Part shown: positions 10,557 to 30,570 of the stretch, one piece after another
Layout of the letters: the number at the start of each line of letters is the position of its first letter
Numbering within the stretch: the first letter of the stretch is position 1
Assembly: GCA_977017575.1 (NCBI GenBank)
Contig: CDRNVI010000099.1
Location: 1 to 64,000 of the forward strand
From: Paramoeba atlantica
Lineage: Eukaryota; Protista; Discosea
DNA: 64,000 nucleotides
Reading direction: 5' to 3'
Position numbers and translations under genes: made by a program
The notes under the pieces: generated by a model
The model's input: only the letters and a program-made list of their open reading frames with translations
Databases searched by the model: none
What the model was told of the DNA's origin: nothing

Positions 10557-10616
10557 CTCCCTCAGTTATTTGAAAAAAAAGGAACCAAAACAGTGAAAAT
10601 ATAAAGGGGAACACAG

Positions 10617-10823
10617 TAACCCAGATTGAAAGGGGCGAGGGAGATACGAAGCAACAGGCGTGGCAGATTCCCACTGAAAAGAAATGGTATCTCCCGCACG
10701 AAGTTTGTCTCCGAGCTAGAAAGCGCAAAGGCTTTTCTCGTGCGGGGAGATACCATTTCTTTTCAGTGGGAATCTGCCACGCCTGTTGCTTCGTATCTCC
10801 CTCGCCCCTTTCAATCTGGGTTA
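10617..10823. repeat. 207-bp foldback: ~85-bp near-perfect inverted arms with a 36-nt loop, at the Helitron 3' end
   Basis: taacccagattgaaagggg...atggtatctcccgcacga (10617-10701) is inverted at 10738-10823 with a single extra G. Confidence 0.95.
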
Positions 10824-10826
10824 TAC

Positions 10827-12842
10827 GGCGGGCCGTTCGAGGCGCAGACCCGCTGGCGCGGGTGGTGCTTTACCTCGTGACAAGTAATCTTGAAGGAAAC
10901 AAGCTTCTGAAATCTTTTTTTTGAAGGACCCGCCCGGCGGGCCCTTCGAGGCGGTGCAGACCCGCTGGCGCGGGGAGTGCTTTACCTCGTGACAGGTAAT
11001 CTTGAAGGAAACAAGCTTCTGAAATCCTTTTTTTGAAGGGCCCGCCGGGCGGGCCCTTCGAGGCGGTGCAGACCTGCTGGCGCGGGGAGTGCTCTACCTC
11101 GTGACAGGTAATCTTGAAGGAAACAAGCTTCTGAAATCTTTTTTTTGAAGGACCCGCCCGGCGGGCCCTTCGAGGCGGTGCAGACCCGCTGGCGCGGGGA
11201 GTGCTTTACCTCGTGACAGGTAATCTTGAAGGAAACAAGCTTCTGAAATCCTTTTTTTGAAGGGCCCGCCGGGCGGGCCCTTCGAGGCGGTGCAGACCCG
11301 CTGGCGCGGGGAGTGCTCTACCTCGTGACAAGTAATCTTGAAGGAAACAAGCTTATGAAATCTTTTTTTTGAAGGACCCGCCCGGCGGGCCCTTCGAGGC
11401 GGTGCAGACCCGCTGGCGCGGGGAGTGCTTTACCTCGTGACAGGTAATCTTGAAGGAAACAAGCTTCTGAAATCTTTTTTTTGAAGCACCCGCCCGGCGG
11501 GCCCTTCGAGGCGGTGCAGACCCGCTGGCGCGGGGAGTGCTTTACCTCGTGGCAGGTAATCTTGAAGAAAACAAGCTTCTGAAATCTTTTTTTTGAAGGA
11601 CCCGCCCGGCGGGCCCTTCGAGGCGGTGCAGACCCGCTGGCGCGGGGAGTGCTCTACCTCGTGACAGGTAATCTTGAAGGAAACAAGCTTCTGAAATCTT
11701 TTTTTTGAAGGACCCGCCCGGCGGGCCCTTCGAGGCGGTGCAGACCCGCTGGCGCGGGGAGTGCTTTACCTCGTGACAGGTAATCTTGAAGGAAACAAGC
11801 TTCTGAAATCCTTTTTTTGAAGGGCCCGCCGGGCGGGCCCTTCGAGGCGGTGCAGACCCGCTGGCGCGGGGAGTGCTTTACCTCGTGGCAGGTAATCTTG
11901 AAGAAAACAAGCTTCTGAAATCTTTTTTTTGAAGGACCCGCCCGGCGGGCCCTTCGAGGCGGTGCAGACCCGCTGGCGCGGGGAGTGCTCTACCTCGTGA
12001 CAGGTAATCTTGAAGGAAACAAGCTTCTGAAATCTTTTTTTTGAAGGACCCGCCCGGCGGGCCCTTCGAGGCGGTGCAGACCCGCTGGCGCGGGGAGTGC
12101 TTTACCTCGTGACAGGTAATCTTGAAGGAAACAAGCTTCTGAAATCTTTTTTTTGAAGCACCCGCCCGGCGGGCCCTTCGAGGCGGTGCAGACCCGCTGG
12201 CGCGGGGAGTGCTTTACCTCGTGGCAGGTAATCTTGAAGAAAACAAGCTTCTGAAATCTTTTTTTTGAAGGACCCGCCCGGCGGGCCCTTCGAGGCGGTG
12301 CAGACCCGCTGGCGCGGGGAGTGCTTTACCTCGTGACAGGTAATCTTGAAGGAAACAAGCTTCTGAAATCCTTTTTTTGAAGGGCCCGCCGGGCGGGCCC
12401 TTCGAGGCGGTGCAGACCCGCTGGCGCGGGGAGTGCTTTACCTCGTGGCAGGTAATCTTGAAGAAAACAAGCTTCTGAAATCTTTTTTTTGAAGGACCCG
12501 CCCGGCGGGCCCTTCGAGGCGGTGCAGACCCGCTGGCGCGGGGAGTGCTTTACCTCGTGACAGGTAATCTTGAAGGAAACAAGCTTCTGAAATCCTTTTT
12601 TTGAAGGGCCCGCCGGGCGGGCCCTTCGAGGCGGTGCAGACCCGCTGGCGCGGGGAGTGCTCTACCTCGTGACAAGTAATCTTGAAGGAAACAAGCTTAT
12701 GAAATCTTTTTTTTGAAGGACCCGCCCGGCGGGCCCTTCGAGGCGGTGCAGACCCGCTGGCGCGGGGAGTGCTTTACCTCGTGACAGGTAATCTTGAAGG
12801 AAACAAGCTTCTGAAATCTTTTTTTTGAGGGGCCCGACCGGC
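10827..12842. repeat. 112-bp tandem array: 17 full units plus partial units at both ends
   Basis: Units start exactly every 112 bp from 10923 to 12715. Each has a GC palindrome (gaagg(a/g)cccgcc-n-ggcgggcccttc), a ttacct/aggtaa hairpin and a T7-8 tract. Confidence 0.97.
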
Positions 12843-13187
12843 TAACATTTTGCCTCTGGGAGGTCTATGTTCGATTCTACTTACGTCTTGTTTATGTTAA
12901 GCATTGAGCCCTTTATGTTGTACTTTAATAATGCAAAAGTGCACCTATGGGCACGTTCACTGGCTCAGTGAGACGGAACCGAGGTTCCCCCAACACTTAC
13001 ACCAGGTCGTGCATACGGAACATTTCGTTCGTTGACAGTTCTTTATGTATCTCTGCTTGGTTAGCCAACAGGCATTAAGCTCAGACGCCACGTCAAGGCG
13101 AGAGATAATTGTCTGAGGACCCTCTTCTCACGAAGAAGGTATTTAAAATGAATGTGATTTTCGTATCAATTTACTCTAATTTCTTTT

Positions 13188-16100
13188 CTATTTTCCACTG
13201 TACATTTCTTGTTCCACTGTATTTCTTGTTCTTCGCTCTTTTGCCCATACCGCTTCTACCGATTCCCGGCTGACGATCTGAGCAAGTTCCGTACGAGACA
13301 GTTCAGGAGGTGTTTCGAGACCTGGAGTTGCGCACTGAATCATCCAACGGCAAACGAATAAAGCACAGTCATTGGTGCCATCATCTTGCACCAAGGTTGA
13401 GCCCTGTATAATCTCCCAGCCACGTGGTCCGTGAAAGATATTTTGCGCAACAGTTTGCACATCTAAGAGCACTTCAGTTCTTCTCCTCGGATTGTGGTTA
13501 GGCAGGGAATCGAACCAAAGTAACTTTCCGCCTTCTTTATTTTCATGCGGTACGATAACACATAGAGCGAAGTGTTGATTGAAAAAGAATGGAACGGCAG
13601 TGCGGTCAGCCAAGAAAATTCTTGTTCTTATTTCTGCCGGTAAATCCCCTACTGATGTGGCATATCTCTTAAAAATCGTAGTTGCCACAGAACTATCCAA
13701 TACTTGATATCTTTCAGACGGGCTTGAAAGTACTGAACCTAAAGTGTTTATAACTGTGTCCGGTATAAATTGTCCAGGTTGTGTCCACTGATTGTCTTGC
13801 GTCCGATCTTTTAACTGGGGTCGCGTGTAAGTTTCACTTTCGCGCGACATAGGGTATTCCCCCTTTCTTTGCAGTTTCTTTTTCGTAGATGGCGGAGGGC
13901 AACGGTACAGAGTTTTTTCAGGTACGTATTTTTCATTGCCTTCCTTCTGCGTCATACGTTTCACAAATTTCGAAACGTCGGCGTTGGGTCGCAAGTTTTC
14001 CAAGTAGCTAAAGCCTCCATCACTTCTTTCAGGGAGTAACCAAAGTTGACTCACACTTTTTACTCTTGAGAGGGCCACGTACACCGAGGCATGACATAAC
14101 ATCTTGCTGTGATAGCATGTTGGTCTGCGGTTCAAGTCTATGCAGACATTTTCTGTAAGAGTAGCTCCCTGTACTTTGTGAATGGTGTAAGAGAAGCCGC
14201 ACCCAATTTCAAGCTCATCATCAATATCACTTTTTCGAAATTCAGCCGAAAGATTTCCGTCTACTGTTGAGGCCGAGATGCCAGCTATTGAGAAGGCTGT
14301 GCAATCCAAAATTTTACCAGGCCTTCCATTTTCTTTAATGTATGAGCTTAATTCTTCTTTGGTCTTCTCGTTCTTTACAATGATTTCATCTTCAATCATT
14401 AGCGTACCATTCACTAGTCGCCTCTGCGGGCATAGGTTGACTAGGCACATCACGGGTTTCCCAGGAACAGAAAAATACCTAGCGCCTCCTATTGAGAGCT
14501 CCAATACGGACATGCCTCTTTCCTGAGCAAATTCCTGACTCCGAAGTCTTGAAAGTACTTCTTTTTCTCTGTTGGTGCTCACCAGCATGCAAGAATTCTT
14601 TGGTATCCCATCAGTAGCATACTGGGCGTTTTTTAAGAAACCCTTAAATGATGAAGCGCATAAGCTTGGATCCCGCAAGTTCATCAGCATTCTTTGATGT
14701 TCAAAGTCCTTTTCACTTGTTCCATCTGCTCTATGTTGGGTGGTAAGATTCGTAAAAACAAAATCATTGATTCCTAATGTACATGAATGGGGGCTGCAGC
14801 TAGCACCGTAGACAAGTGATGAGCCTGAAGTTCGTACTGGGGGTAATTGGAAAAAATCCCCGACCATGACTATGGAAAACCCGCCAAATATTGCTTGGCT
14901 CTCAGAAACTGCACAAAGTCTTTGATGAATTTGCCACAAAGTCTTAGTTGACACACACGATGCTTCGTCGATCAAAACGGTATCCACGCCATTGAATTTT
15001 TCTTTTAACTTTTTCAGCCTCTGAGGGTTTAGATAATCTAGGAAAGCGCTCTTACTCTTTTTACTCCACGCTGCTGGGAAACAGAATCCAGAATGTATGG
15101 TCTCCCCATTAATGTTGACAGCGCAAGCCCCCGAGTATCCGAAGGCAAGTACGGATCTTGGGCGGAAAGCGTTCTTGGCTTCCATAAAGCATCGGCTGGT
15201 TTCACTTTTACCACACCCTGGACCTCCATGTAGAAAGGCTTTGTATCCTTCTGACAATCCTATATGATTTTCTGTTTGCTTTAGTGTGTTGAGAACGAAT
15301 TGCTCTTGATCCTTATCTAACTTTTTGTCGAGAGACCTATTCCTTATATGTTTTTCACCTACACGAAAAATGAGCTCAACACTTTTGTTTATACTAAGAA
15401 CTCGGGCTTTCGAGAACGGATTCTGATTCAAACTTTCCAATACATCTTCTTGCGTTACATTATTTTGCTTGAGCTCATCAATATCATGATCAGGCGTTTG
15501 ATTTGAAATTATCCTCCTGGATTTCCCAGCTGACACCTTTATCTGAAACTTGTATGTTTTGTTGTCGAAGTTATCGCGACAGGATGTACTCATTGCGCCG
15601 ATGCTCTGAGGCGCAGCATAGCAATGATTCGTTCTCTGATCCGATGTCCATGTATCTTTCAAAAGCCTTTCTACTTGATCTTCAAGTTCAACCAAGAAAA
15701 GTTCAGTTTCAACGTTTCTTTTCTTTCCTTTCTTCGAATTTGCTTGATGTTGTGCAAGGAGATCGTTCGCTTCCTGAATTCCATCCGCAGCTTCTTTTTC
15801 TAAACACCCAGTAGCTTCTGCAACATCTTGCGCTGTTTCTGTTAAGCCTTTTGATTTCCATTCTTCATAAGTAGTAGCTTCCTGGTGCCTAAACATGTTG
15901 ATCATGCATCTTGGTTCTTCAAAGGAAGAATCCTGAATTCCGATTCTCAAGTTATTGATGATCTTAATTAAGCAAGAGCAAATTTCCGGAGGGTATTCCG
16001 TTCCTTCCACCTTTTTTCCCTCACTACACTCCTTGAGTATCTTCAAGTACTCTTTCCAGTCGCTTGGCCTATATGATATTTTCTTATCTTTTGAGAAGGG

Positions 16101-19100
16101 GCGCATAAGGGCAGAAAAATATTTCGCGTGTTTTTTTGCTAAAACAGTTGTAGAATGATCGCAATCGACATCCCGGAGATGTGACCAGTGTGGTATATAC
16201 CCTGGAGATGGGATAACATATTTGCTCCGTATTCGCTGAGTAAAAGTTTCAATCAGCGGATGTCCTTTCTTGAATGCGAATGTAGTGTTTCTTGATCTCC
16301 CTTTCTTGGTTCTACCAATTGTTTTCACTGATGATATGCGAACTCTCGCAATAGTGGCGTCGTAAAGGTAAAAATTTAAGAACTCAAGTTCTGTGCCTCG
16401 AAAGTAATAGTCCAGAGCCTTACTGCACATTTCAGTAGACCCATCATCCCTTACAATCACATCAGAGAGGCCTTCATTATCTGATATTTCGCTATCAGTC
16501 TCTGTTTCGTCTTCCTGTACTCCTGAAACGCCTTTGACCATTAATTTAGATGCCTGCCGTACATCCAAGTAGGAAACTATATGGCTGCATTCTTCCGACT
16601 CATAACCAAGGCAACAATACATGGCCAGCTGGGCCGACACTTCTTGCATTCCTAGTTGACTATTTCCAAGCCTATTGCAGAGCAACGTGTCTGCTGAATT
16701 CTCGTGCGATCTTCGGCTTCCGTATTTTTCTTTGTGTTTTGCTGCTTGAACTGCCCCAATACAAGTATTGATATCAAGCAAGTTTTTGGACAAATATTTA
16801 AAAAGATAGAAAGTAGTTATCGCTGCAACGCAAGCTGATCCGAGAAAAACAACATTTGTATTGAATCCCAGGAGGCAGGACATGATCGAATTGTATTCTG
16901 CAGTATTTTTATCCCTTGATGATCTCTTAGGCAAGTACAATAGAGGGCGAAAGTCGGGTGACATATAACCAAAGAAAGAGGGCTCTGTACTTTCAGCACG
17001 GGCCGCCATATTTTCTGAAACTGTTTTTGCCACTACTTTTCCTGGTGTAGAACTTGATTGTTCTAACAAATAAAAAGCATTCAATGGCGTAACCTGGCGT
17101 GGGTATGCATATCGGCATTTTGTTGGCGCTACACCTATATTTTTGAAACATTTCTCCGTATGCACATGCTGTTGCACAGTTGATGCAACTCGATGCTCTC
17201 TGATATCCATGGCTTTCTGATTATCGAATGGCGGGCATGCCTCTAACCCCACTCTTCCCCCGACGCTTCTCGTATCTCCTTTATCCCACGGCACGGAAAC
17301 CGTCATCCAATCAGAAACTAATTGGCTTATACTGTTTCTTTCTGATTCCATATGAATCTTTTCGGAAGCATACTCAGCGAGAGGGATGCCCCATAGAACA
17401 ATATGCATATGCAAATTTCCTCTACCTTGTGTCTCAACCACCCCAAACATTCCCTTCATAATCTTGAAAATTCCGACGGGCATTTCTTCTGAAATAGCAC
17501 TGACCGATTGGCCTGATTTTTTAAATCGTTTGTGCGGGACTACACCAAATATCGTGGTAAGTAACGCATCAATAATTAAATGAAATGTTTGCGCTGCATA
17601 TGCAGGGTGATCTCGCACTTTTTGTACTCTTTGGTACGCATCGTCAATTAGAAAATCCTCTTGCACGCTTTTTGAAGAGGCGCATAGGTATTCCAGGGTA
17701 ATTTTCATATCTGGATCGCATGGGGATACGGTGACGTAGAGTGTCGGATGACCCATGAACCCATGAATTGCCACCATTTGTTTAAAGCACGCATTCCGAG
17801 CTGCGTCGGAAAATGGAACATCACGAGTTACAATATGCAGGACATTGCATGCTTCCAACAGAAGCTTACGATTTTCCTTTCGTTGAGGGTCCTTCTGTGC
17901 CTCCTTCAACTGCACAATTATATTTTCTTTTTCCAAAAGTTTCTTTGCTTTTTTCCACATATTGGGCTTGACCCTCACACTCCGAGCTAAGGAATGGCGC
18001 CTGATTTGATCCCAATGTAAGAAACCAAAATTTCCGTTTCTGCACCAACGAGGGTCTTTTTGCAACAACAAATGCTTCAGGCCGCTGTCAGGAGTAAGGG
18101 GGCGCTTTAGGAGATTGGCAGACGCTTCAGAAAGAACTGGAAAAAGATCTGGAAACCCCATTCCCAAAATTTTGTCATTCTCGTTAAACTCGTTAGCTGC
18201 ACTTGTAACGTGAATTCTGGCATGGTGCCTTCTTTGGTCATTACCTTTTATGAGGTTTGTTAGGCTTTCGACTATCTCATCCTCAGCATTTCGTTGGGGA
18301 GGTTCACATAGTAAAACGTTTTCTACCTCCGACTTTTCTTCTTCTATCGCGTTTCGTTTATGAGCTAATAGTGAAGCTGCCACTGAAATGGCATTGTTGA
18401 CAACAGTTGCTTCTTCAAGTATTCTTTTGCTTTCGTTCACCAAATCCTCTATTCTCTGTTCCGATATGTGAATATCTGAGTAGAATACATTGTGTTCTTT
18501 AAGAAAATAAAGCCAAGCTCTTGTAGCGTCAGCCCGAACAGAGAAATATGCCTGTAGGGAAGCATCTGTTTCAGCTTTCCTTTTTGTTTGTTCACCGACA
18601 AATGTCACAAACACCCTCTGTTCAGTAGCTGGAAGAATCTGAGCTATGTCCTGAGGTCCTGTTGAAAACAATGAAATAACATGATTTCGAAATTTTTTCT
18701 CAAAATTCCGCTCATGACGAATTTCACAGAGCGTCTGGAAATTCAGAATACGGCATATGGCCGATCGTTCGACAACTCCCAATGTTGGCAAACGGAGATC
18801 TCTTAAATTCAGACCAAAGTCCCAGTCGTTCTTAAACGAAAAGTATGGGATGCCTCCTAGTCTAACGCTTTTCCTGCAACGAGAACACGAGCGCACCTCA
18901 GTACCAAACACCGCCTCCGAATCTATGCAATACAGATTTCCACCTATCGAAGACGTGTGTTTTCCTTTTAAGTTTGCATCCATGCTAGCACGAAGCATGT
19001 CACAGTCTTTTACAGGGATTCCTTCCAAAATCTCATGGGAAGGTTCAATAACCCCACACACACCACACGACGTAGCTTTAAGCTCTGTATTCCTTTGGAA

Positions 19101-19562
19101 ATTATGAAAACATTCAGCTTTTTCTTCAGACGTGCAAGGCTTCAATTCCTGCTTCCAATCCTTTGGAAACATTGGTGATCCCTGTAAAAATTTTAGTGAT
19201 GCAGATCGAGGGCATTCTTCTGCCTTTTCAATTGATGCTAGTTTCCACTTCTGTTGTATGGCATTACTTTCTTCCGTCAATGCAAATTCCTGGGAAGGAC
19301 GCGTGTTCTGGTAAATTGACTCACTCTGGCGTTCATGAGACAAAGAGGCAATTTTTACGTTATGCTCAGGGGTGGAAACATGCAGTTTCACGTTTTCCAG
19401 TGAAGCAGCACCTCTATATTTGCAGGAGGAGCATCTGAACACTCGCCTGCTAGGTAAGAAAAGCACCTTTCTATGGGATTTGTTATACGTTGCTAAGAAG
19501 GCTCTAATTTGATGAGATTCCCCTTTCTCATGCCGTAATTTGATGAGATTCCCCTTTCTCAT
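13188..19562 (-). CDS. Helitron RepHel protein: HUH Rep + PIF1-family SF1B helicase + C-terminal Ulp1/C48-like cysteine protease
   Basis: Rep motifs: LYVTVSP, ETQGRGNLHMHIVLW, YLFKYLSK. Helicase motifs: HGGPGCGKS, LIDEAS, VGDFFQLPPV, YTIHKVQGATL, YVALSRV. Protease motifs: QHFALC, WFDSL, QDDGTNDCALF. 2124 aa with no stop codon. Confidence 0.92.
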   Translation of the reverse strand: MRKGNLIKLRHEKGESHQIRAFLATYNKSHRKVLFLPSRRVFRCSSCKYRGAASLENVKLHVSTPEHNVKIASLSHERQSESIYQNTRPSQEFALTEESNAIQQKWKLASIEKAEECPRSASLKFLQGSPMFPKDWKQELKPCTSEEKAECFHNFQRNTELKATSCGVCGVIEPSHEILEGIPVKDCDMLRASMDANLKGKHTSSIGGNLYCIDSEAVFGTEVRSCSRCRKSVRLGGIPYFSFKNDWDFGLNLRDLRLPTLGVVERSAICRILNFQTLCEIRHERNFEKKFRNHVISLFSTGPQDIAQILPATEQRVFVTFVGEQTKRKAETDASLQAYFSVRADATRAWLYFLKEHNVFYSDIHISEQRIEDLVNESKRILEEATVVNNAISVAASLLAHKRNAIEEEKSEVENVLLCEPPQRNAEDEIVESLTNLIKGNDQRRHHARIHVTSAANEFNENDKILGMGFPDLFPVLSEASANLLKRPLTPDSGLKHLLLQKDPRWCRNGNFGFLHWDQIRRHSLARSVRVKPNMWKKAKKLLEKENIIVQLKEAQKDPQRKENRKLLLEACNVLHIVTRDVPFSDAARNACFKQMVAIHGFMGHPTLYVTVSPCDPDMKITLEYLCASSKSVQEDFLIDDAYQRVQKVRDHPAYAAQTFHLIIDALLTTIFGVVPHKRFKKSGQSVSAISEEMPVGIFKIMKGMFGVVETQGRGNLHMHIVLWGIPLAEYASEKIHMESERNSISQLVSDWMTVSVPWDKGDTRSVGGRVGLEACPPFDNQKAMDIREHRVASTVQQHVHTEKCFKNIGVAPTKCRYAYPRQVTPLNAFYLLEQSSSTPGKVVAKTVSENMAARAESTEPSFFGYMSPDFRPLLYLPKRSSRDKNTAEYNSIMSCLLGFNTNVVFLGSACVAAITTFYLFKYLSKNLLDINTCIGAVQAAKHKEKYGSRRSHENSADTLLCNRLGNSQLGMQEVSAQLAMYCCLGYESEECSHIVSYLDVRQASKLMVKGVSGVQEDETETDSEISDNEGLSDVIVRDDGSTEMCSKALDYYFRGTELEFLNFYLYDATIARVRISSVKTIGRTKKGRSRNTTFAFKKGHPLIETFTQRIRSKYVIPSPGYIPHWSHLRDVDCDHSTTVLAKKHAKYFSALMRPFSKDKKISYRPSDWKEYLKILKECSEGKKVEGTEYPPEICSCLIKIINNLRIGIQDSSFEEPRCMINMFRHQEATTYEEWKSKGLTETAQDVAEATGCLEKEAADGIQEANDLLAQHQANSKKGKKRNVETELFLVELEDQVERLLKDTWTSDQRTNHCYAAPQSIGAMSTSCRDNFDNKTYKFQIKVSAGKSRRIISNQTPDHDIDELKQNNVTQEDVLESLNQNPFSKARVLSINKSVELIFRVGEKHIRNRSLDKKLDKDQEQFVLNTLKQTENHIGLSEGYKAFLHGGPGCGKSETSRCFMEAKNAFRPRSVLAFGYSGACAVNINGETIHSGFCFPAAWSKKSKSAFLDYLNPQRLKKLKEKFNGVDTVLIDEASCVSTKTLWQIHQRLCAVSESQAIFGGFSIVMVGDFFQLPPVRTSGSSLVYGASCSPHSCTLGINDFVFTNLTTQHRADGTSEKDFEHQRMLMNLRDPSLCASSFKGFLKNAQYATDGIPKNSCMLVSTNREKEVLSRLRSQEFAQERGMSVLELSIGGARYFSVPGKPVMCLVNLCPQRRLVNGTLMIEDEIIVKNEKTKEELSSYIKENGRPGKILDCTAFSIAGISASTVDGNLSAEFRKSDIDDELEIGCGFSYTIHKVQGATLTENVCIDLNRRPTCYHSKMLCHASVYVALSRVKSVSQLWLLPERSDGGFSYLENLRPNADVSKFVKRMTQKEGNEKYVPEKTLYRCPPPSTKKKLQRKGEYPMSRESETYTRPQLKDRTQDNQWTQPGQFIPDTVINTLGSVLSSPSERYQVLDSSVATTIFKRYATSVGDLPAEIRTRIFLADRTAVPFFFNQHFALCVIVPHENKEGGKLLWFDSLPNHNPRRRTEVLLDVQTVAQNIFHGPRGWEIIQGSTLVQDDGTNDCALFVCRWMIQCATPGLETPPELSRTELAQIVSRESVEAVWAKERRTRNTVEQEMYSGK

Positions 19563-19794
19563 GCCGTTGAACGTTCTTTCTCACTACTTCAATATTGCAA
19601 ACATCGCACATGTAAAGTGCAACGTTAACGCTTCCTTCTACTTTCTGAACATCATACGTTTCCTCACCATCTTTGCAATGCTTCTCCCGCATGTGCCGCT
19701 TCATGTTTCTTTGCAAACTAAAGCATCCGCAAATATTGCAACGTATTTTTTGACTCTCGTGAGACGACAGGTGGGTATGTCTCTTTTTCGGCAT
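19528..19794 (-). CDS. N-terminal C2H2 zinc-finger segment of RepHel, separated by a 31-bp tandem duplication
   Basis: CNICG...HMREKH and CDVC...HEKGESH. Removing one copy of the duplication (19506-19536 / 19537-19567) gives one frame from 19794 to 13188, 2191 aa. Confidence 0.75.
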   Translation of the reverse strand: MPKKRHTHLSSHESQKIRCNICGCFSLQRNMKRHMREKHCKDGEETYDVQKVEGSVNVALYMCDVCNIEVVRKNVQRHEKGESHQITA

Positions 19795-20346
19795 ACTAGA
19801 GGAATAAAAAAAGGGTTTGAAATTACTCTAGCACGAAATGCCACTCTATTACTGTACCTGAACACACTTCAACCTCGTAAACGCCAACTTCACTTTTCAT
19901 ACATTGTCAAACCATACAAAATTTCAAATTCCTTTCTTGGCAGTCTTCCACTAAAAGTGGCTTTTTCATTACTAATACAGTAATGATTCAACTTCCTACT
20001 TCTACCACTATAGTGAAGTGTCTTAGCTCGGGCGGCGGGGTGCGCTAAGCCCCAACACTACTAGCCTAAATCATCAACCAAAGCTTTCAAAGTGTGGTAG
20101 CAGTGCCCCTGGCCGGAGTGATTCTCTTTCTCTTTCCTTTATTTCTACCGCCCACCTTTCCACGCCCTTCTTTTTCTACACATCCTCGCTCTGTGTCTCT
20201 CCTGTCCCACCCTCTCTCTGAGAATAGCTCTCTCTGAGAATAGTATGACCCTGCTCGTTTTTTTTTCTCTACATATATACAAAATGCAAACCGTGTTTTT
20301 GGTGGCCAGCTGGCCACTTTTCGACGAAGCACAAACCGGGTTTTTG

Positions 20347-21345
20347 GTGGCCAGCTGGCCACCCTTCCACAACATGGCCAGCTGGCCACCCTTCCACAAC
20401 ATGGCCAACTGGCCACCCTTCCACAACATGGCCAGCTGGCCACCCTTCCACAACATGGCCAGCTGGCCACCCTTCCACAACATGGCCAGCTGGCCACCCT
20501 TCCACAACATGGCCAGCTGGCCACCCTTCCACAACATGGCCAGCTGGCCACCCTTCCACAACATGGCCAGCTGGCCACCCTTCCACAACATGGCCAGCCG
20601 GCCACTCTTCCACAACATGGCCAGCTGGCCACCCTTCCACAACATGGCCAGCTGGCCACCCTTCCACAACATGGCCAGCTGGCCACCCTTCCACAACATG
20701 GCCAGCCGGCCACCCTTCCACAACATGGCCAGCTGGCCACCCTTCCACAACATGGCCAGCTGGCCACCCTTCCACAACATGGCCAGCTGGCCACCCTTCC
20801 ACAACATGGCCAGCTGGCCACCCTTCCACAACATGGCCAGCTGGCCACCCTTCCACAACATGGCCAGCTGGCCACCCTTCCACAACATGGCCAGCTGGCC
20901 ACCCTTCCACAACATGGCCAGCTGGCCACCCTTCCACAACATGGCCAGCTGGCCACCCTTCCACAACATGGCCAGCTGGCCACCCTTCCACAACATGGCC
21001 AGCTGGCCACCCTTCCACAACATGGCCAGCTGGCCACCCTTCCACAACATGGCCAGCTGGCCACCCTTCCACAACATGGCCAGCTGGCCACCCTTCCACA
21101 ACATGGCCAGCTGGCCACCCTTCCACAACATGGCCAGCTGGCCACCCTTCCACAACATGGCCAGCTGGCCACCCTTCCACAACATGGCCAGCTGGCCACC
21201 CTTCCACAACATGGCCAGCTGGCCACCCTTCCACAACATGGCCAGCTGGCCACCCTTCCACAACATGGCCAGCTGGCCACCCTTCCACAACATGGCCAGC
21301 TGGCCACCCTTCCACAACATGGCCAGCTGGCCACCCTTCCACAAA
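20347..21345. repeat. 27-bp tandem array, ~37 units, containing the 14-bp palindrome TGGCCAGCTGGCCA
   Basis: Unit atggccagctggccacccttccacaac with only a few point variants; degenerate copies continue to ~21535. Confidence 0.97.
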
Positions 21346-21574
21346 TTGGCCACTTCTAAAACATGGTCACTTCCACAACATGGCCAGCTGGCCATGATGA
21401 TTTCGAATACGAGGAGGTACGTGTTCGGGTGCACTGTTCGTCGTTCGTGTAATAAGGCGTTGTACTTGAGGCGTTTATATTCATTCCAGCTGGCCACCCT
21501 TCCACAACATGGCCAGCTGGCCACTCTTCCACAACACTCTCCCACCCCTGTGGGACTCACTCAGTCGACTCACT

Positions 21575-22625
21575 CAACGTGAGTCACTGCCCCACGTGGC
21601 AGTGCTCTGACTCTCTCACGTGCCACTGTAGGTACAGTGCCGATGCAGTCGCTACCTTACGTGGCAGTACTCTCACTCTCTCACGTGCTACTGCAGCTGC
21701 ACTGCATCACTGCAGTCACTGCCTCACGTGGCATTGCCTCTCACTCTGCCACTGTATCTACACTGCAATCACTGCCTCACGTGGCAGTACACTTACTCTC
21801 TCACGTGCCACTGTATCTACACTGCAGTCGCTGCCTCGCGTGACACTACTCTTACTCTCGCACGTGCCATTGCAGCTACACTGCATCACTGCCTCACGTG
21901 GCACTGCTCTCACTCTCGCACGTGCCACTGTAGGTACAGTGCCGATGCAGTAACTGCCTCACGTGGCAGTACTCTCACTCTCTCACGTGCTACTGCAGCT
22001 ACAATGCAGTCACTGCCTCACGTGGCACTAGTCTTACTTTCGCACGTGCCACTGCAGCTAAACTGCATCACTGCCTCACGGGGAACTGCTCTCACTCTCT
22101 CACGTGCCACTGTAGGTACAGTGCCGATGCAGTCACTACCTCACGTGGCAGTACTCTCACTCTCTCACGTGCCACTGCAGCTACACTGCAGTCACTGCCC
22201 CACGTGGCAGTACTCTCACTCTCTCACGTGCTACTGCAGCTGCACTGCATCACTGCAGTCACTGCCTCACGTGGCACTGCCTGTCACTCTGCCACTGTAT
22301 GTACGCTGCAATCACTGCCTCACGTGGTAGTACACTTACTCTCTCACGTGCTACTGCAGCTGGACTGCATCACTGCAGTCACTGCCTCACGTGGCACTAC
22401 TCTTACTCTCTCACGTGCCAGTGCAGCTACACTGCATCACTGCAGTCACTGCCTCACATAGCAGTGCACTTACTCTCTCACGTGCCACTGCAGCTACACT
22501 GCATCACTGCAGTCACTGCCTCACATTGCAGTGCACTTACTTTGGCACGTGCCACTGCAGCTGCACTGCATCACTGTGCAATCACTGCCTCACGTGGCAC
22601 TGCTCTCACTCTCTCAAGGGCCACT
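21575..22625. repeat. Degenerate minisatellite of alternating cactgcctcacgtggcag and ctcacgtgc(c/t)actgcagct modules
   Basis: Dozens of CACGTG and CTGCAG palindromic hexamers with a period of about 55-65 bp. Confidence 0.9.
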
Positions 22626-22810
22626 TTAGCTACACACTGTGCCACTCGGACCTGCACATTATTTTTCTCTCTATATATATACAAAATGCAAACCGTGTTT
22701 TTGGTGGCCAGCTGGCCACTTTTTTCAAGAAAAAAAAATCTGAAAAAAAAAATCGTTCCGAATTTGTTTTTTTCGCGATTTTGAGCATATAATTTTTTTT
22801 GTTCAAAAAT

Positions 22811-22880
22811 GTCGATGCCGGGAATCGAACCGCGGACATCCAGCGTCAAAATGGAACCCCTTTACCAACTGGACTACTCA
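22811..22880 (-). pseudogene. tRNA-like pseudogene or SINE head
   Basis: Minus strand reads tagtccagttggtaaag ... ggttcgattcccggcatcgac followed by a T5 run. The acceptor and T stems do not pair properly. The 3' end (ggttcgattccc..atcgaca) resembles that at ~4390-4410. Confidence 0.5.
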
Positions 22881-23918
22881 AAGGACTCTCCTTAGTCAAC
22901 CAGTTTGTCGTATCGCAGACCTTTGCAGACGCACTTTTTTTTACCAAAAGTGTTCTACAATTTGGGAAATGAGGTCGTTGTAGATAATTTTTCGAGTATT
23001 AAAGAGTTCATCTAATGAGTTACTGCTACGTTTTAAAATTTTGAAAAAACTCGATCTCTCACTTCTTTGAGGGGCATTTTCAAGTTTTGGAATTAACCTT
23101 AGTAAGCGAGTTAGATACTCCGTATCTCCCTCAATAAATTATTACTTACTAAACTATTATTTATAATATGTAAGGAAAAAAAAAGGTGTTGCTGAAAAGT
23201 GAAAGGGGGCTGAAAAGTGACCCCCCACATTTTGTTTCGTACAAATGTCCCTTTGAGCTGATTTTTGTGGTATTTTGCAGGTCTTATCATAGGAACTTTG
23301 CGCGCTTTTTAGCGGGCCGCAACAGAGAACACAGATTAATTATAACGTTGTCGATCACATTTTGAGAGATATCGGCGAGCTTGTGCCGAATATACAGACC
23401 CCCTGATCCCCCGCTTTAATACGGAATTTTTCGATGTTTTTGGATAGAAATTGGTGGAAGTACACCATCAATTTCCGAATCAATTGGTGGAAGTATACGG
23501 GGAATTTAAGGATTGGAAAAAAACACCCTTTTTTTCTTTTTTTTCGAATTCCATTGTTCAAGAGCACGACCCAAATTGTCACCCTCAAGTCGAGTTATGG
23601 AGTTGATGCTGATGCTTCGAGCATCATTATACATGCATGAACCTCAACCTACCTAGGAAGGAGGAGCCTACGCCTGACGCAGGTAAATGGGCTGTACCAA
23701 CAACTCCTTATGGAGTGCTGATATCGAGGGCCAGGAAATGCCAAACTCTGTATATATACAGAAGATACATAGATATAAACCCCGCGTCTTTGAAAAGTGA
23801 CCCCCCACTTTTTTTTCGTACAAGCGTCCGTTTGAGCTGACTTTTGTTGCATTTTGAAGATCTCAACGCAAAGAGTTTGCGCGTGAAGAAACGAAACAAA
23901 AAGAAGCGAATACGTATA

Positions 23919-24228
23919 CTATCCCCCCCTATTTAATAGGGCTACGTGTGACCCCCCTTTAATAGGGCCATTTTGTCTGGAAAGCCAAAAAAGCTTTAAG
24001 GAAAGGTGCCAAAAAAATGCCGAATCCGACGCGAAGCGGCGGATTTTTTTTTTGTATGTACCCCAACAACCAAAAGTGTATAAAGAGGGAGTAGGACCTT
24101 GTTTCACAACGATAAAAAAGGCGCCGCGAAGCGACGCCGATTTTTTCTTTCACATTATTATCCATGTTCCCCCCCTTTAATAGGGCCTTTTGCCCAAAAT
24201 CAGAGTCCTATTAAATAGGGGGGGATAG
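23919..24228. mobile_element. Tc1/mariner-type MITE
   Basis: TA|ctatccccccctatttaatagg ... cctattaaatagggggggatag|TA. Confidence 0.8.
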
Positions 24229-24434
24229 TATTTTAGAGAAGAATTACCATTTTTTCACTTTTTCGTCTTTCAATCTTATACACTCCTTAAGGCGTGAGTC
24301 AAAACTTAAGACCGTTTTGTCGATCACATTTTGAGATAAACAAGACCACGTTTTGAGTACACATCGGATGAGTGAAGGCTTATCCGATGGGGTATGTTCG
24401 TCCACTACCCCTTAAACCATAGACCAGATGTTTT

Positions 24435-24635
24435 CTATTGAGAAAGATCTGGTGAGTCGGCGGACCAATTTTTTAGAAGTTCACTCATTGTGCTTTTAAT
24501 GTACTCTTTGGAGGCACGGGTAGTGTTTGACGTTGCCCCCTCTTGTTGAAATATATGATGAGGGGGGTCCACCTCGCTTAATGCTTTTACGTACGTCATA
24601 CTCGTAATACATGTTTCATCTTGTAGAAAAATCAA
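24435..24635 (-). pseudogene. Tc1/mariner (IS630-Tc1) transposase fragment
   Basis: IFQQEGATSNT...NWSADSPDLS matches the FQQDNAxxH...WPxxSPDLNPIE consensus. Confidence 0.7.
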
Positions 24636-25321
24636 ATACCTCCGCCCTACCCCAATAGCCCCCCAAGCTTAGTACCTTGGACCCCAAGGTACTTTTTGAC
24701 GCGTGGCTGCTTTTTGACCGCGCCTTACCCACATATTTCTTGTGCTATCTCGGTGTCTCATGCTATCTTCTTTCGGTGTCTCATGCTATCTATGTCTTGT
24801 GCTATCTCGGTGTATCTCGGTGTATCATCTGCAAAGGAACATTCCCACTATCAGTAACCCCCCCTCTTGGTGATGATTTAGCCAACGTGATGATTTAGGC
24901 ATCTTTGAAAAAAAAGGTTGAAAAATCAATTTTATTTTCTTGATATTTTTTTGTGTTTTTAATTGAGCAAAAAACAGCGGGAACGTACAGAGCTCAAAAT
25001 TTTGAACGAAAAAATAGTATGACAACCCTGCCATGCTCTTTCGTGCGAAAAATAAGGGGGGGTCACTTATTGGTGACGCGGGGTTTAAACCTAGGGACAC
25101 GAATAAGTCACCCCCCCCCCCCCTTACTTTTTGCATGAAGGGGCCTAAGGGGTTTATGACACCACGAATATGTTGTTTTGGTGTACACCCCCTAGGCCCA
25201 CCGGAAACCTACCCTCCCCCCCGCCCTATCTTATTTTGAAATATCGTATCATGAAATTTTCATTTTCAAAACATACAATGAAATACACGCATTATACGAC
25301 GCATTGTAGAATCACTTAAAG

Positions 25322-27956
25322 TTACGAATCAATAATATTATCGGTTTCAACTTCAGAATGCAAACACTCAGATGTGCACGTGTTATCTTCAGTATAGTAG
25401 CTTCTGGTTTCTCCCTTTTGCGTATTGCACTGCTCAATAGGTTTTATCGACTTATCCAAATAAGGTAAATATGACATGTTTCCTCGTAAAAACATTTGAT
25501 TGGCGACTGTACATGTTCCAATACTGGCTTGTCGACTACTGTACTTGTTACTTAACACTGAAAGCCACGAATCGCATTGCGTTACTACAGAAGGAAGCGA
25601 AATCCAATGTTTCGCTGCCCGATACACTTCCGGTAACATTGTCCGCCCGATGTCCTCCCACCGCACGTGCTCGTTCGTGTGCTTGACGGGACTTATGTGA
25701 TAATTAGCGGCGGTAACAAAAGCATTCCAAGCAATCTCAGTAATACCGAACAAATCTTCACTCTCATCTCGGAAAAATAGGTTGTTGGCGCGATGCACTG
25801 ATATCAGTCGAGCCTATCCTATCCTATCCTATCCTAAAACACTGGTTATTAAAACCAGTTAAGAAAACAACCTTTTCTTACGTTGTAACTACTTTGGATC
25901 CTTAGAAGTTTCATCCTTATCCCCCCCAGATTCTTCCATTACCTGTTGAAGTTCTTTTTTGGTCCCTTTATACTGCTTCTTTTTGACTTTATGAGTATTA
26001 CTGGAACCTAAGTACTCATTCTCTTCCGAAGGGAGTTCCACGGAACTTACACCTACCTTGAGAGGCGGTGTACCATCCTCAACCGCAAACCGCTTAGCTA
26101 CAGACAACGTTTTAGCCTCACCAGACAATTTAACCTCACCAGACATTCAGACGAGCACATTCCGCAACCGATTTAGATACGCGTTCGTTTTCTAGTTCTC
26201 GGTGCAGGTATTCCATAACAGTGCGCATTTCTTTAACAAGAAAAGAGATAGAAACAAATTTGCCCAGCACTCACCGAGTGACGCCACCTAGTTTGGGGGT
26301 TTCTACGGCCCTATTGGCTCGTGAAATGTTCAAAGCTTCGGAAATCTGAGCTCCATGTTTAATAAGAATTTCGTGCTTTTCCTTCGTATCCTCTGCATTA
26401 TCAAGTTCACTTAATAGTAAATCCGCGCTCTCTCCCACAACGGGCTTCAGGACGTAAAGTGCTTCCCGAATTCGGGATTCGAGATTAAGTATCCAAGAAT
26501 TGGGCGCCTCTTCCATTCCGAGGGCCCCATAAGATTGCATGAAAAAAAATTCAGCGTCGACTACTCGCTTCTCAAACTTCGCAAGCTGGACGCCTAAGGC
26601 GACGCCCCTGTACTTGCCTTGCTTTGCACTAGTTTGTGCTCCGGAGTAGAATGCGTTGCAGAAGGAACGCTTAAGTCGAAAAATAGGCTTGTTTTCGTAA
26701 TCCTTTAATGTCTGTTTCGCATTGTTGTTAAGCACGTGTCCTACGCAGCTCAACAAAGTTATCTTAGGCAGCCTCTCTCGTACCCCGAGTTGAATGTTGA
26801 TGCGATCGGTGGAACCGATGTCTTGAATTCTCCCATAAAACTCAGCTAAATTCCCCATGTATTCTTCGCATTCAATGCGAGCAACGTGATTCACAGTTGA
26901 GCCATCGACTTGTAAAAATCGTAGCTTGAAGATGCAATCTTCGTGAAGCACTCCGGCCAAAGAATTTATGAGAGTATGTGCTGCTTCTTTCCCGTCAAAG
27001 GCACCGTGTTTTCTACTATACATTGGAGGTAGTAGAAACCGTGCACTCCCAACGTACAACACTCCGATCAGAACATACTCATGCAGTACGCGGTCAATTT
27101 CCGCATCGAGAGCAATTCCGAAGAAGCATTCAGAATCAACCTTCGATCTTATATGGGCCCACAGCTCATCAGTCAACTCTGCTTCCCATTCATGCAATTT
27201 TGTTGAGTGGTTCGGAAGCCGTGGCGCAATAACATGCGGTGGAAGTTTCGGACGGAAATCTTCATATGCTCGCAGTAACCACATGGCCCTTGAGGCAGAC
27301 AAATTGGTGGAGGACAGCAAACACGGTAAAACCTTTCTAGTAAAGACGCTCACAGAATCAATATTTTCTTGATTTATCGATTCTTCAGGCCCTTTGCATT
27401 CGACGCGATGTTTGTAGTATACATTGTTGGAGGGGGAATGCGAGAACGAACAATGTTTACATTGAAGGTGTGCTCTGTTCCCGAAACTATTCCTGAGGAC
27501 CTCATCAGTATTGCGCTGAGCATAGGCCTTGTATTTTTCATTGCGGGAGCTGTCAGGAGATCCACAACATTGCTCTAGCTTGAAATGTTCAGGCAAATTT
27601 TTTTCCGACATTCGATGTCGTGACCTTCGTTCTGGTGTAGGAATGGTGCAATTTGAAATTCTCTGCTTTACGGGGGTTGGCTGCGGAGCTCCTATTGCAA
27701 TGCGAAGAGACGTGCGTTCTTCGCTCCGCTCCGAGACACTCAGACCCGCGGCTGATGAATTTCCTGCTGTAGACTCATTCTCCTCCGTTGGCTGTGAATT
27801 CGTCTGAGTGTGTCCGCGTCTGCTTACGCGAGATCGCTTTCTCATAAAGCAAAAAGAGAAATGAAAGTCAGGAAAGAATGTAATCAGATGAAACACTATA
27901 ATAAATTTGACTAGTTTCGTTTGGTAAGTACATATAATTATTTTTTTGCTGTGCAC
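25322..27956 (-). pseudogene. Divergent hAT-like transposase, broken by a stop and frameshifts
   Basis: BED-like CKHC..H..C; FGIALDAE and LQVDGSTVN (DDE aspartates); SCVGHVLN (CxxH); GGVTR followed by TGA where W is expected. A dimerisation-domain-like segment LPSVVTQCDSWLS...RQ...QMFLRGN lies in 25322-25798. Confidence 0.7.
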
Positions 27957-28284
27957 CTGTTACGAAACGGGTTACCAAAAAAGTGTGTAAGTGGCTAACT
28001 TACACGTGTACGTACACACTTACACGCGGAAGGTATGTATTAAATTAATACGAATGATACACATCAAAAGAGTGAGTTGCTACATCAATATTGCCACATC
28101 AAAAGAGTGAGTTGCCCCAGGAGAAAAGGCCGTCCCCACGCAAAAAATGCGTTGGGCGCGCAAATGTCACGTGTAGGGTGCCATTGGAGTTGGATGGTGT
28201 TGCGTTGCGGTGCTAATATCCAACGTTTCAATCACAAGTGAAACTTGTGTAGAAATGTTAAGTAATGTTCCTTTTTCCCGCAAA

Positions 28285-28590
28285 TTTATTTTTCAGCAAG
28301 ATGGGATGGGTTCACGCACAACGAAAAGTACGAAACCCTATTTCTTTACTTCAAACAATTAATACCAAATTGGCCGGCAGGTTCTCCTGACCTTAATCCT
28401 ATTGAGAACGTGTGGGAAATGATTCAGCAACGCGTAAATGAAATGAATCCGTCTTGTACTACACGTCTTGTACCTCTCTAACTAAGTGTGTAAAAAACCT
28501 TTAATAATATTCTTGAATTTGAGCTTGACCGTACTGTTTTAAGTTTCGACAGATGCCTGAAACTATGCAAAAAAAATGGTGGCTAAAAAG
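28285..28590 (+). pseudogene. Tc1/mariner transposase C-terminal fragment
   Basis: FIFQQDG..., NWPAGSPDLNPIENVWEMIQQRV, and a terminal CKKNGG*, with frameshifts between them. Confidence 0.75.
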
Positions 28591-29643
28591 TACAAAAGTA
28601 GTAATACTAAATTCACATTTTATTGGTTCCCAGTTTTATTCTCTATATGATATGCGCAAACAAGTGTCACCGAGATCTGCAAAATGCAATAAAAATTAGC
28701 CCAAACGAAGAATTTACCCAAATTTTAGAGGGGGGTGACTTATCGTGTCCCTAGGGTTATAACCCAGGGAAAAGTGGACGAGGAAGATACCAATAGTTTA
28801 GGTGCGGCAATTTCCAAAGGAAAAACGGCATCTCTACCTTTTTAGGCGCTTGCCTTCATGCCATAAGGGAGAGAGTGTGCCTTGCGTGACACACACTTCA
28901 AGTTGAAAAAAGCATATGTGGCAAATTGTTTGCAAATCGCTTCCGAAGAAGGGGGTCTCGAGTGGTCCAAAAGGTTCGTTTTTTCCCTAAAACTATCTAT
29001 TTATGGTGCTGCCTTTGGTTCTTTGCGTAAAAAACTTTTTTCGGATTTTTTTTTTCGGGACAAATTTCGGGCGAAATTTCGTGCCAGATTTATTGATATA
29101 GGGTAGCGAGGGAGTAGTATCTCCCTCAATAGAAGAAAAAAATATAGGGGGCTCCGGTGGTCCAAAACTGAAAAAGAAAATTAAAAAACATGGGGGGTCC
29201 AGGGGAGGCATACGTCGCGATTTTGTTTTCAAAATCGAGCGCAGGAGCATGCCGCGGCGATAATTTTCCACCCCCCCCACCTGGGGGTGACCCCCCCGGT
29301 ATGCGCAGGAGGGGTCCGACAAGTTCAAAAATTCCGAAACTTTTTGGGGTGACCAAAAAAAGTAAGAATATGATTTTTCAAAAATCGACTCCTAAGACGT
29401 ATTTTAAGAGTAAGGACGTCAGCTACCATTCCACGACGTTTTTTTCGACAGATGCGCCTCCCACCCCTACCGGAAAGGCATCGAATATCGCCCACAACGA
29501 GGCGAGCTAGAATCTTGCTACGGTTGAAATGGGATTATGGTTTGGATGGGTGTGGGACTCAAACACGGTTTCCATCTCCACATTTTCCTTCCCGCGATTC
29601 AGAAGTCCAGAAATTCACTTGAAACTAACAACATCCAAGCAAT

Positions 29644-30570
29644 CTAAAAATCAACATCCAGGTTTCGAATACACGTATTGTAGTACTTGAATCCATCACG
29701 CAAGCGAAGTGGTAATTCGTCTTCGTGGAATTTGCCGTGAAGCTCCTTGTTCTCAAATAACCACAAATACTCCATGTTCGTTGGGAGACAATCAAAGGCA
29801 ACTGAACCACAAAATTGATTCTTCTGTAAGTATAATTGTTCTAGTGCAGATGACAAATTTCTTAGATCCGGAGTTCCTGTAAACTGATTGCGACCCAAGG
29901 AAATATGTTTCTGATGCGGAGCTAATTGTGTCAGATCCAGCTCGCCATATAACGCGTTTTCGTGAATCGAAAACTCATCCAGGGGTTCCGGCAGACAGGT
30001 GAGATCAAGCCTTCCTGTAAAATCGTTCCTGTGCAACACAAGCTGAACTAATTGTCGAGGAAGATCTTGTAGATGCAACTCCTCTGTGAGCACATTATTG
30101 TGAAGGTCCAAGCACGTCAAATTCCGAGGCACGACGTCGAGCGGCAGTTTTCCCCCGAGTCGGTTGCTGTTCGCAAAAAAGCCTATAAGTGTCTGTGGCA
30201 AATATTCCCATTGCGGCGTACCACATAGTTTTCGGTTATCCCACATGATAGCGATGATTTTATCGGTACCAGCGCACCCCACACCTTTCCACTCACACGC
30301 AGGCAATGATGGATTTCCAAATACGGAAGGTCCAGATTCCATGCCAGAGGTAATGTTTGTAAGAAATCGAGCTAACTCATACTCCTGTGGCAGGGTAGCG
30401 CCTCGTACTTTGGATGCACGCGAGGGGTACATGGCAGTGTCTGAAGCAGATTGCTTTTGCCGCTTGCATGGCGGTTCATTAGCATCGGACATAACTATCG
30501 TAAATTTCATAAAGGGAAAATATAAAAGGAGGCGCAGCATGACATGCAATGTACAGTAATATACCGTCAC
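29644..30570 (-). CDS. Small LRR protein (family member 1); true start probably a downstream Met
   Basis: PPCKRQK, KVRGATLPQEYEL, LRR N-cap PACEWKGVGC, seven LxxLxLxxNxLxG repeats. Confidence 0.85.
   Translation of the reverse strand: MTVYYCTLHVMLRLLLYFPFMKFTIVMSDANEPPCKRQKQSASDTAMYPSRASKVRGATLPQEYELARFLTNITSGMESGPSVFGNPSLPACEWKGVGCAGTDKIIAIMWDNRKLCGTPQWEYLPQTLIGFFANSNRLGGKLPLDVVPRNLTCLDLHNNVLTEELHLQDLPRQLVQLVLHRNDFTGRLDLTCLPEPLDEFSIHENALYGELDLTQLAPHQKHISLGRNQFTGTPDLRNLSSALEQLYLQKNQFCGSVAFDCLPTNMEYLWLFENKELHGKFHEDELPLRLRDGFKYYNTCIRNLDVDF

Follow-up and report, generated by a model that had tools for sequence, protein, structure and literature searches.

A putative Helitron2 element with a long 3′-terminal palindrome forms part of an 18.5-kb composite insertion in Paramoeba atlantica

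INTRODUCTION

Helitron2 elements were defined by a 5′ asymmetric terminal inverted repeat (ATIR) that is terminal and associated with a hairpin and by a 3′ ATIR in a subterminal position (Bao and Jurka 2013; PMC3627910). In HLE2/Helitron2 elements, the 5′ ATIR is located 0 to 2 nt and the 3′ ATIR about 20 to 30 nt from the respective end, a short stem-loop follows the 3′ ATIR, and insertion takes place between T and T without duplication of the target. For Helitron-like elements (HLEs) in general, the HELIANO paper reported that DUF6570 is specific to HLE2, that an endonuclease is restricted to the Helentron subgroup, that UCH is enriched in HLE2 subgroups c/d, and that Peptidase_C48 is among the domains encoded (PMC11417382). 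Chimeric FoHeli elements of Fusarium possess several 5′ termini and one 3′ terminus (Chellapan et al. 2016; PMC5148889), for which a nick at the leftmost 5′ end and unwinding up to the first 3′ end that can be used were proposed, and the bypass of a 3′ end has been shown experimentally for the HLE1 element Helraiser, as cited in that paper. Here, we describe a locus of Paramoeba atlantica in a window of 64,000 nucleotides (positions 1 to 64,000 of contig CDRNVI010000099.1, assembly GCA_977017575.1). It contains a 12.5-kb element, termed M (10617 to 23132, minus strand), with a transposase of the RepHel type. M is the major part of an 18.5-kb block that interrupts a copy of a dispersed host repeat, termed R. 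We regard it as fairly likely that M is a mobile Helitron2/HLE2 unit and that the block represents a composite inserted into R.

Like Helitron2 (PMC3627910) and HLE2 without an endonuclease (PMC11417382), M encodes an HUH/Y2 RepHel protein with a Pif1-type helicase and DUF6570. Further common features are the 11-nt ATIRs, with a 5′ ATIR that lies 0 to 3 nt from the end and pairs with downstream sequence and a 3′ ATIR 20 nt from the end, as well as T-rich flanks, the absence of a target duplication and nonautonomous partners with common termini. M differs from Helitron2 in that its last 79 nt are present as an inverted repeat 49 nt upstream, resulting in a 207-bp palindrome that encloses the ATIR, and in that its transposase ends in a Ulp1/C48-like domain. 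Helentrons and HINE/DINE-1 elements (Thomas et al. 2014; PMC4067079) likewise have subterminal inverted repeats and a 3′ palindrome and insert in a TT-type manner, as M apparently does, and the internal tandem arrays of M, which vary in copy number, resemble those of Helentrons (PMC4067079) and the satellites borne by oyster Helentrons (PMC7492417). In contrast to Helentrons, M shows no match to an apurinic/apyrimidinic endonuclease domain, and its palindrome arms measure 79 bp compared to the 5 to 10 bp reported there. A rolling-circle RepHel transposase is shared with canonical Helitrons (HLE1; Helraiser), but M lacks 5′-TC and CTRR-3′ ends, an A^T target and the 16- to 20-nt hairpin about 11 nt from the 3′ end, and it carries ATIRs and DUF6570 instead. 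ATIRs, internal satellites, protease fusions and chimeras with multiple 5′ termini have already been published, and knowledge of the class is unchanged by this locus. Unusual are the long terminal palindrome layout that three families have in common and an intact transposase with defined partners.

RESULTS

The ends of M were defined by copies on other contigs. A preliminary description of the window had reported an 11-nt motif, GAGGGAGATAC, and each of the reported sites was found: the motif is present without mismatch at 10637-10647 (plus strand), and its reverse complement is present at 2913-2923, 23122-23132 and 29117-29127, directly followed on the plus strand by AAT in the latter three cases. 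We detected a further exact copy at 10793-10803 (minus) and copies with one mismatch at 10687-10697 (minus) and 28780-28790 (plus). Allowing one mismatch, the window contains 8 matches where 0.63 are expected, a number that was reached in 0 of 100 shuffled sequences. To obtain copies of M with their flanks, the fragments in the 90%-identity cluster of the RepHel protein were located on six other contigs of one public assembly (L002 to L007), and these contigs were compared to the window by BLAST. Four of them (L002, L003, L006 and L007) carry degraded M copies, and L004 and L005 carry the same deletion derivative (20304 joined to 14473) at two different loci. Five independent 5′ ends aligned from ATT followed by GAGGGAGATACGG onward, the DNA upstream being unrelated, and four independent 3′ ends read ...GTATCTCCCTCGCCCCTTTCAATCTGGGTT(A/T), i.e., CTGGGTT(A/T), followed by unrelated DNA. 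Since these independent ends fix both boundaries, the family unit extends from 23132 to 10617 and has a length of 12.5 kb, compared to the up to 18.5 kb proposed before.

The left terminal sequence of M (23083-23135, minus strand) consists of ATT, the 5′ ATIR GAGGGAGATAC (23132 to 23122) and a downstream GTATCT/CTC partner with which the ATIR forms a hairpin by AGATAC/GTATCT and GAG/CTC pairing; this terminus can also be written ATTGAGGG. The ATT at 23133-23135 is invariant and may also belong to M. The right terminal sequence (10617-10647, minus strand) comprises the 3′ ATIR GTATCTCCCTC (10647 to 10637) and a 20-nt tail, GCCCCTTTCAATCTGGGTTA. Overall, the ends read (ATT)GAGGG... and ...CTGGGTT(A). 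A second terminal type, which we call S-type and which is described below, carries the same ATIR, and the two types begin ATTGAGGGAGATACGG... and ATTGAGGGAGATACTACTCCCTC..., with a right end pattern of ...GTATCTCCCTCG-N19-TT. The distance of the 11-nt ATIR from the 5′ boundary is 0 to 3 nt (five M-type and three S-type ends), and the 3′ ATIR of M lies 20 nt from the boundary in four copies. The ATIR pairs with two different partners in M-type and S-type ends, with modest energies of −4 to −8 kcal/mol. ATT precedes 8 of the 9 5′ ends, TT(A/T) is found at the 3′ ends, and no target duplication was observed. The left flank had been described as ending at 10619; its continuity with the right flank was substantiated. 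We prefer to set the boundary at 10616, or at 10617 in case CTGGGTT is the end of the element; CTGGGTT(A) is conserved at the 3′ end of other copies.

Another M-type left terminal sequence is situated at 2874-2926 (minus strand). Its hairpin loop is 2 nt longer, its body runs leftward, and, as noted before, the end at 2923 adjoins the end of another copy of R, namely its 5′ end in head-to-head orientation (CTCCCTCAATTGCGGTGGTTG). A 3′ end of this element was not found within the window. The first 45 nt are shared with M, and a 27-bp array at 1312-1451 has a unit related to the 27-bp satellite of M (common TGGCCAGCTG). The element is a diverged M-type relative.

The transposase of M is encoded by an uninterrupted ORF (open reading frame) of 2,124 amino acids (13188-19562, minus strand). 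DUF6570 (residues 237 to 371; Pfam E value, 7e-16) is followed by the Rep/HUH domain (496 to 723; Helitron_like_N, 1.7e-18), a Pif1-type helicase from residue 1428 (PIF1, 1.3e-15) and a C-terminal Ulp1/C48-like domain (about 1930 to 2080). The HUH histidines (H718 and H720), both tyrosines (Y919 and Y923) and the Walker A (GGPGCGKS) and Walker B motifs were invariant in an alignment of RepHel with 21 relatives. Neither the complete ORF nor its last 525 amino acids matched an endonuclease domain (Exo_endo_phos) at E values up to 1. When the same 22 proteins (query and 21 nearest relatives) were scanned for domains, DUF6570 was detected in 20, UCH in 2, OTU in 1, C48 in 1 and the endonuclease in 0; the nearest relative carries UCH. 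An exhaustive profile search with RepHel returned 69 proteins below 1e-30, the best of which showed 37% identity. Comparison to the PDB gave no match for the Rep part, and Pif1 helicases alone were matched. The Ulp1/C48-like domain (window 13191-13700, minus strand) showed weak matches (Pfam C48, E = 0.054; PDB 1euv, yeast Ulp1, E = 0.12). Nevertheless, the C-terminal 170 residues align with Ulp1 at 4 of 4 catalytic positions (H in NQHFAL, D in WFDSL, Q in VQDDG and C in NDCALF), and the deletion derivative in L004 and L005 has retained exactly this part as a 408-amino-acid ORF (P0006). Judged by its markers, M can tentatively be placed in the Helitron2 branch of HLE2, the branch without endonuclease. 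A Helitron2-type nature had been proposed before and agrees with DUF6570, the terminal 5′-ATIR hairpin, the 3′ ATIR 20 nt from the end and the TT-type flanks.

An exact-protein look-up of RepHel retrieved nothing but this locus on L001, an independent contig (window 9502-26060, 99.9%), which supports the assembly in this region; a second intact copy was not retrieved by this look-up. M is intact and probably still mobile. The nearest foreign relatives are located on the metagenome contigs L008 and L009 (BLASTP identities of 37% and 32%, respectively; 37% each with phmmer), which are too short to define element ends or to show whether they share the long palindrome. In L008, the ORF is flanked on either side by a recurring palindromic motif of 20 nt, GGGTTGAAAATTTTCACCCC (187-206, 9534-9554, 11637-11656 and 11760-11779), and L009 contains 185-bp tandem repeats upstream of the ORF (500-1257).

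The 3′ end of M is formed by a palindrome of 207 bp (10617-10823, minus strand). Its arms (10617-10695 and 10745-10823) are 79 nt long and 100% complementary, and they are separated by a loop of 49 nt. The terminal foldback of the preliminary description was thus confirmed to be present, but it is larger than implied. Folding of the single-stranded DNA yielded −114.9 kcal/mol (z score, −24.9). Each arm contains the ATIR and an inverted ATIR-like copy about 45 nt away, so that four copies are present in 207 bp. The palindrome was found at the 3′ boundary of the copies in L004, L005 and L007. As it encloses the 3′ ATIR and the tail, it constitutes a variant form of the 3′ hairpin, and the S-type and R families show the same layout with other sequences. 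Concerted evolution of the arms was considered and rejected, as L002, L003 and L007 have substitutions in one arm only.

M contains the three satellite arrays that had been reported together with RepHel, as identified with Tandem Repeats Finder. The 112-bp satellite (18 copies, 10826-12842) lies directly upstream of the 3′ palindrome and is present in L002 to L007 with varying copy number. Each unit includes a 25-nt GC-rich palindrome, GAAGGACCCGCCCGGCGGGCCCTTC, at 10923-10947 and then every 112 bp up to 12842; about 18 potential hairpins are therefore located directly upstream of the terminal palindrome. The 27-bp satellite (37 copies) occupies 20348-21352; its flanks (to 20509, 20428, 20563 and 20617) align in other copies, the array itself having been excluded from the comparison. 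The 59/182-bp satellite (about 16 copies, 21582-22635) is kept in L002 to L005. Apart from these arrays, another abundant repeat, which measures about 800 bp and shows inverted symmetry in its interior (window 82-870; L002 15588-15970; L004 166-954 and 3598-3933; several copies in L006), directly adjoins M copies on other contigs. In L002 it adjoins the terminal palindrome, both arms of which lack the last 8 nt there.

The motif at 29127 belongs to a different element. The preliminary description had taken this position as the end of the RepHel element and had overlooked a 3′ end at 28790 to 28760. Both ends together delimit S, a degenerate nonautonomous element of 368 bp (28760-29127, minus strand) that starts with GAGGGAGATACTACTCCCTC and ends with GTATCTTCCTCGTCCACTTTTCCCTGGGTTA. 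The GAGGGAG/CTCCCTC hairpin reported for its 5′ end does fold (29105-29127). The sequence after the ATIR (GAGGGAGATACTACTCCCTCGCTACC) differs from that of M and is found again on other contigs, where it heads short elements. Canonical S-type relatives were found in L002 (23583 to 22831, 753 bp) and L004 (from 9534), and the element in L002 ends in a palindrome of 190 bp (−80 kcal/mol; z score, −16) with the outer arm GTATCTCCCTCGTCCACTTTAGCCTGGGTT. Because window positions 28790 to 28761 match the S-type 3′ consensus with 3 mismatches in 30 nt, we regard S as a complete but degenerate member of this short family. Its ATIR carries one mismatch, the inner arm of the palindrome has been lost, and the 3′ region showed no fold better than shuffled sequences (z score, −0.5). 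Contigs of four sequencing runs, compared to window positions 24100-30099, cease to match the window at 29131 and 29098/9, which is the pattern to be expected when only the S-type terminus is common to many elements. M-type and S-type elements cluster on other contigs. A similarity between the interior of S and R had been suspected, but the alignment was not significant.

Between S and M, two transposons with terminal inverted repeats (TIRs) are inserted. N, which resembles a miniature inverted-repeat transposable element (MITE), has a length of 1.3 kb (23778-25085; AACCCCGCG...CGCGGGGTT) and is flanked by TA at 23776-77 and 25086-87. H is a TIR transposon of 3.7 kb (25088-28757; A[A/C]CCTAGGGACACGA..TAAGTCACCCCCC) with TA at 25086-87 and 28758-59. 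The TIRs of H are 30 nt long, and N is a MITE-like relative. Other copies of N are present in L005, and read contigs with other flanks break at 25087. H contains an ORF of 561 amino acids (26271-27956, minus strand) without a Pfam match, whose nearest atlas clusters are hAT/ZBED/FAM200 RNase-H-like (scores, 0.87 to 0.90), which we take as a lead only. Once N and H are taken out, an interval of 643 bp remains between the S 3′ end and the M 5′ end. This spacer, termed U′ (23133-23775), is neither R nor a recognizable insertion and holds a fragment of an N-type transposon end (23211-23331). N and H had been interpreted as hAT/Tc1 relics captured by the RepHel element. They lie in the spacer, outside M, and have TA duplications on both sides, so that they represent insertions and not captures; these took place before or after the composite moved.

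The whole block at 10617-29127 interrupts one copy of the dispersed repeat R, as had been proposed. An intact R copy of about 900 bp is located at 62901-63796 (plus strand); other copies are found in the window (8523-9411, minus strand; 37584-38281) and on L002, L005 and L006. R starts with ATTGCGGTGGTTG in a hairpin (z score, −3.9); at its 3′ end, a long palindrome folds with −33 to −44 kcal/mol, and CAACCACCGC is located 22 nt from the terminus. It thus has its own ATIR, TGCGGTGGTTG / CAACCACCGC, which is different from that of M. By its architecture, R is an older nonautonomous Helitron2-like element organized as M is; a transposase matching R was not seen in the window. The left half of the interrupted copy (10546-10619, plus strand) is 5′ truncated by about 24 nt and follows directly on the 3′ end of a second R copy (10328-10545, plus strand; boundary at about 10545-10554). 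The right half occupies 29128-29460 (plus strand). The TAA at 10617-10619 and the AAT at 29128-29130 can be assigned to either flank or element. When positions 10300-10619 and 29128-29700 were joined, a single BLAST alignment across the junction was obtained on intact R copies (62930-63076, 85% identity, E = 7e-42; 9372-9075, 74%). At the insertion point, 7 of 7 intact R copies from the window and other contigs read GAACACAGTAA-TAT-AATAGAAG. The claim that the flanks are consecutive parts of one repeat copy, except for 3 nt, therefore held. Because all seven copies have TAT, we consider the 3-nt discrepancy to be real. If one T per end belonged to the element, the deficit would be 5 nt, in agreement with cleavage at both TT dinucleotides of ATTATATTA; this is speculation.

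The AT-rich insertion site in R, TAATATAAT, is a hotspot. In two further R copies, N-type transposons are inserted a few nucleotides at most from the site of the composite: at window positions 2985-3000, GTAATA is joined to AACCCC..., and on L005 (about 16940-16975, minus strand) GTAATATAATG is joined to AACCCC.... The site is thus also taken by TA-targeting transposons in two R copies, and the possible preference of Helitrons for R that had been put forward is not shown by it. An empty allele joining 10619 to 29128 was not found: no contig of the four runs (short Logan contigs) joined the R halves. One read-contig joint (25087 to 29146, with a 26-nt side) most likely derives from another locus. 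No record was obtained when the flanking ORFs (29647-30570 and 32336-33124) were looked up for an empty-site contig, and bridging searches for the preinsertion sites of the L004 and L005 copies found nothing among the sequences compared.

DISCUSSION

The 18.5-kb block appears to be a one-off composite that consists of S, the spacer, M and two TIR transposons at one AT-rich site of R. Since it is delimited by the 5′ terminus of S on one side and the 3′ terminus of M on the other, with a spacer that does not derive from R, some movement that included the spacer is required. Based on the domains and termini described above, the transposase of M would introduce the nick immediately before GAGGGAGATAC, the terminal ATIR of the 5′ end, folded as a short hairpin, and the Pif1-type helicase would unwind the DNA in the 5′-to-3′ direction. 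Termination would take place 20 nt beyond the 3′ ATIR, at the foot of the long hairpin formed by the 207-bp palindrome, and integration would follow at T-rich sites (ATT upstream of the 5′ end, TTA at the 3′ end) without duplication. The M deletion derivative and the short S-type elements, which have the same ATIR and a similar 3′ tail, would presumably be mobilized in trans. The composite could have arisen if S, spacer and M moved once as a unit: the nick would have been set at the S 5′ end, the defective S 3′ end would have been bypassed, and termination would have followed at the M palindrome. We slightly favor such a single transposition event. Like the FoHeli chimeras, the composite has two 5′ termini of the same orientation upstream of one functional 3′ terminus. 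In contrast to them, its duplicated 5′ part amounts to 6 kb instead of less than 200 bp, and it has kept a degenerate internal 3′ end and two unrelated TIR transposons.

It could be argued that the block is one giant 18.5-kb Helitron2 family element with ends at 29127 and 10617, and that the terminus at 23132 and the other motifs are internal relics. The outer flanks are indeed consecutive in one R copy, and the best hairpin is formed by the 5′ ATIR at 29127, which has no mismatch. However, all other copies found end at the 23132-type terminus with unrelated DNA upstream, and none of them continues into 23133-29127. Moreover, the 29127-type terminus elsewhere marks the start of short, roughly 750-bp elements, each with a 3′ end of its own, and a complete S-type 3′ end is present at 28790 to 28760. 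As a family, such an element is largely refuted, and we consider this explanation improbable. A stepwise assembly at the hotspot deserves somewhat more credit but is still unlikely in our view. Here, S would have entered R, M (or spacer and M) would have been inserted later exactly at the S 3′ junction, for example by a transposase that cleaves resident 3′ ends, and N and H would have followed at TA. Insertions of several families at the R site, the clustering of M-type and S-type elements on other contigs, another M-type 5′ end that adjoins an R 5′ end to the nucleotide and the older appearance of S (mutated ATIR, internal deletion) are in line with this scenario. Yet the 643-bp spacer would still necessitate a composite movement, being neither R nor a recognizable insertion, and two independent events within 0 to 3 nt are less parsimonious.

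The palindrome might also be an unrelated foldback element or MITE that happens to lie beside RepHel, in which case the ATIR matches would be coincidental and the block would be a pile of repeats. Its ends, TAACCC...GGGTTA, superficially resemble the TIRs of H and N (TAACCCTAGGG), and the motif occurs four times within it. We judge this to be very improbable, as all copies that extend this far show the palindrome at an unchanged distance from RepHel and end with it on the 3′ side, an exact complement of the 5′ terminus is part of its outer arm, S-type elements and R have the same layout with different sequences, and the motif count is far above chance.

Several observations weigh against a mobile Helitron2 unit in a composite that moved in a single event. 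The assignment of the protein to HLE2 is based on a marker (DUF6570), and only one RepHel copy is intact. The 5′ hairpins are weak (z scores of −0.65 to −3.0), the canonical short hairpin between the 3′ ATIR and the end is absent, and the 20-nt tail does not form a separate stem. A difference of 3 nt (TAT) at the paralogous empty site is not predicted by a clean HUH strand transfer. Neither a second copy of S-spacer-M nor an allele with S only was found in L002 to L007 or the four read runs; with no second composite copy and no empty allele found, the single-event origin rests on parsimony.

More tentatively, and with a probability that we would rate as low, M could represent an HLE2 sublineage in which the palindrome is the terminator and the transposase cleaves at the foot of a hairpin of about 80 bp with four ATIR copies. 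Loss of one arm, as in S, would then lead to read-through that carries along kilobases of DNA including TIR transposons. If this were true, M, S-type elements and R, with unrelated sequences but one layout, would mark a distinct mechanistic variant of rolling-circle transposition, and the intact 2,124-amino-acid transposase together with its natural deletion derivative would provide a ready-made test system.

Independent of this idea, three families of a single genome have long 3′ palindromes in place of the short hairpin. The locus offers a natural example of how a Helitron-like element with a defective terminator may gain 6 kb of foreign DNA together with another 5′ end. M constitutes good material for transposition assays: its transposase is intact, its ends are known to the nucleotide, and a natural deletion derivative as well as a partner family are available. 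To our knowledge, the HLE1 transposase Helraiser is the only one that has been reconstituted.

OTHER FEATURES OF THE LOCUS

On L005, a host SRP19 gene was found at 2433-2885. When 5.8 billion proteins were searched by word index with this gene, the only match was the gene itself, and the host lineage appears to be poorly sampled. Outside the composite, the window contains a tandem segmental duplication of 6.2 kb with 98% identity (44668-50860 and 51193-57378), and related pieces are present at 34775-36758, 43849-44800 and 57385-59698.

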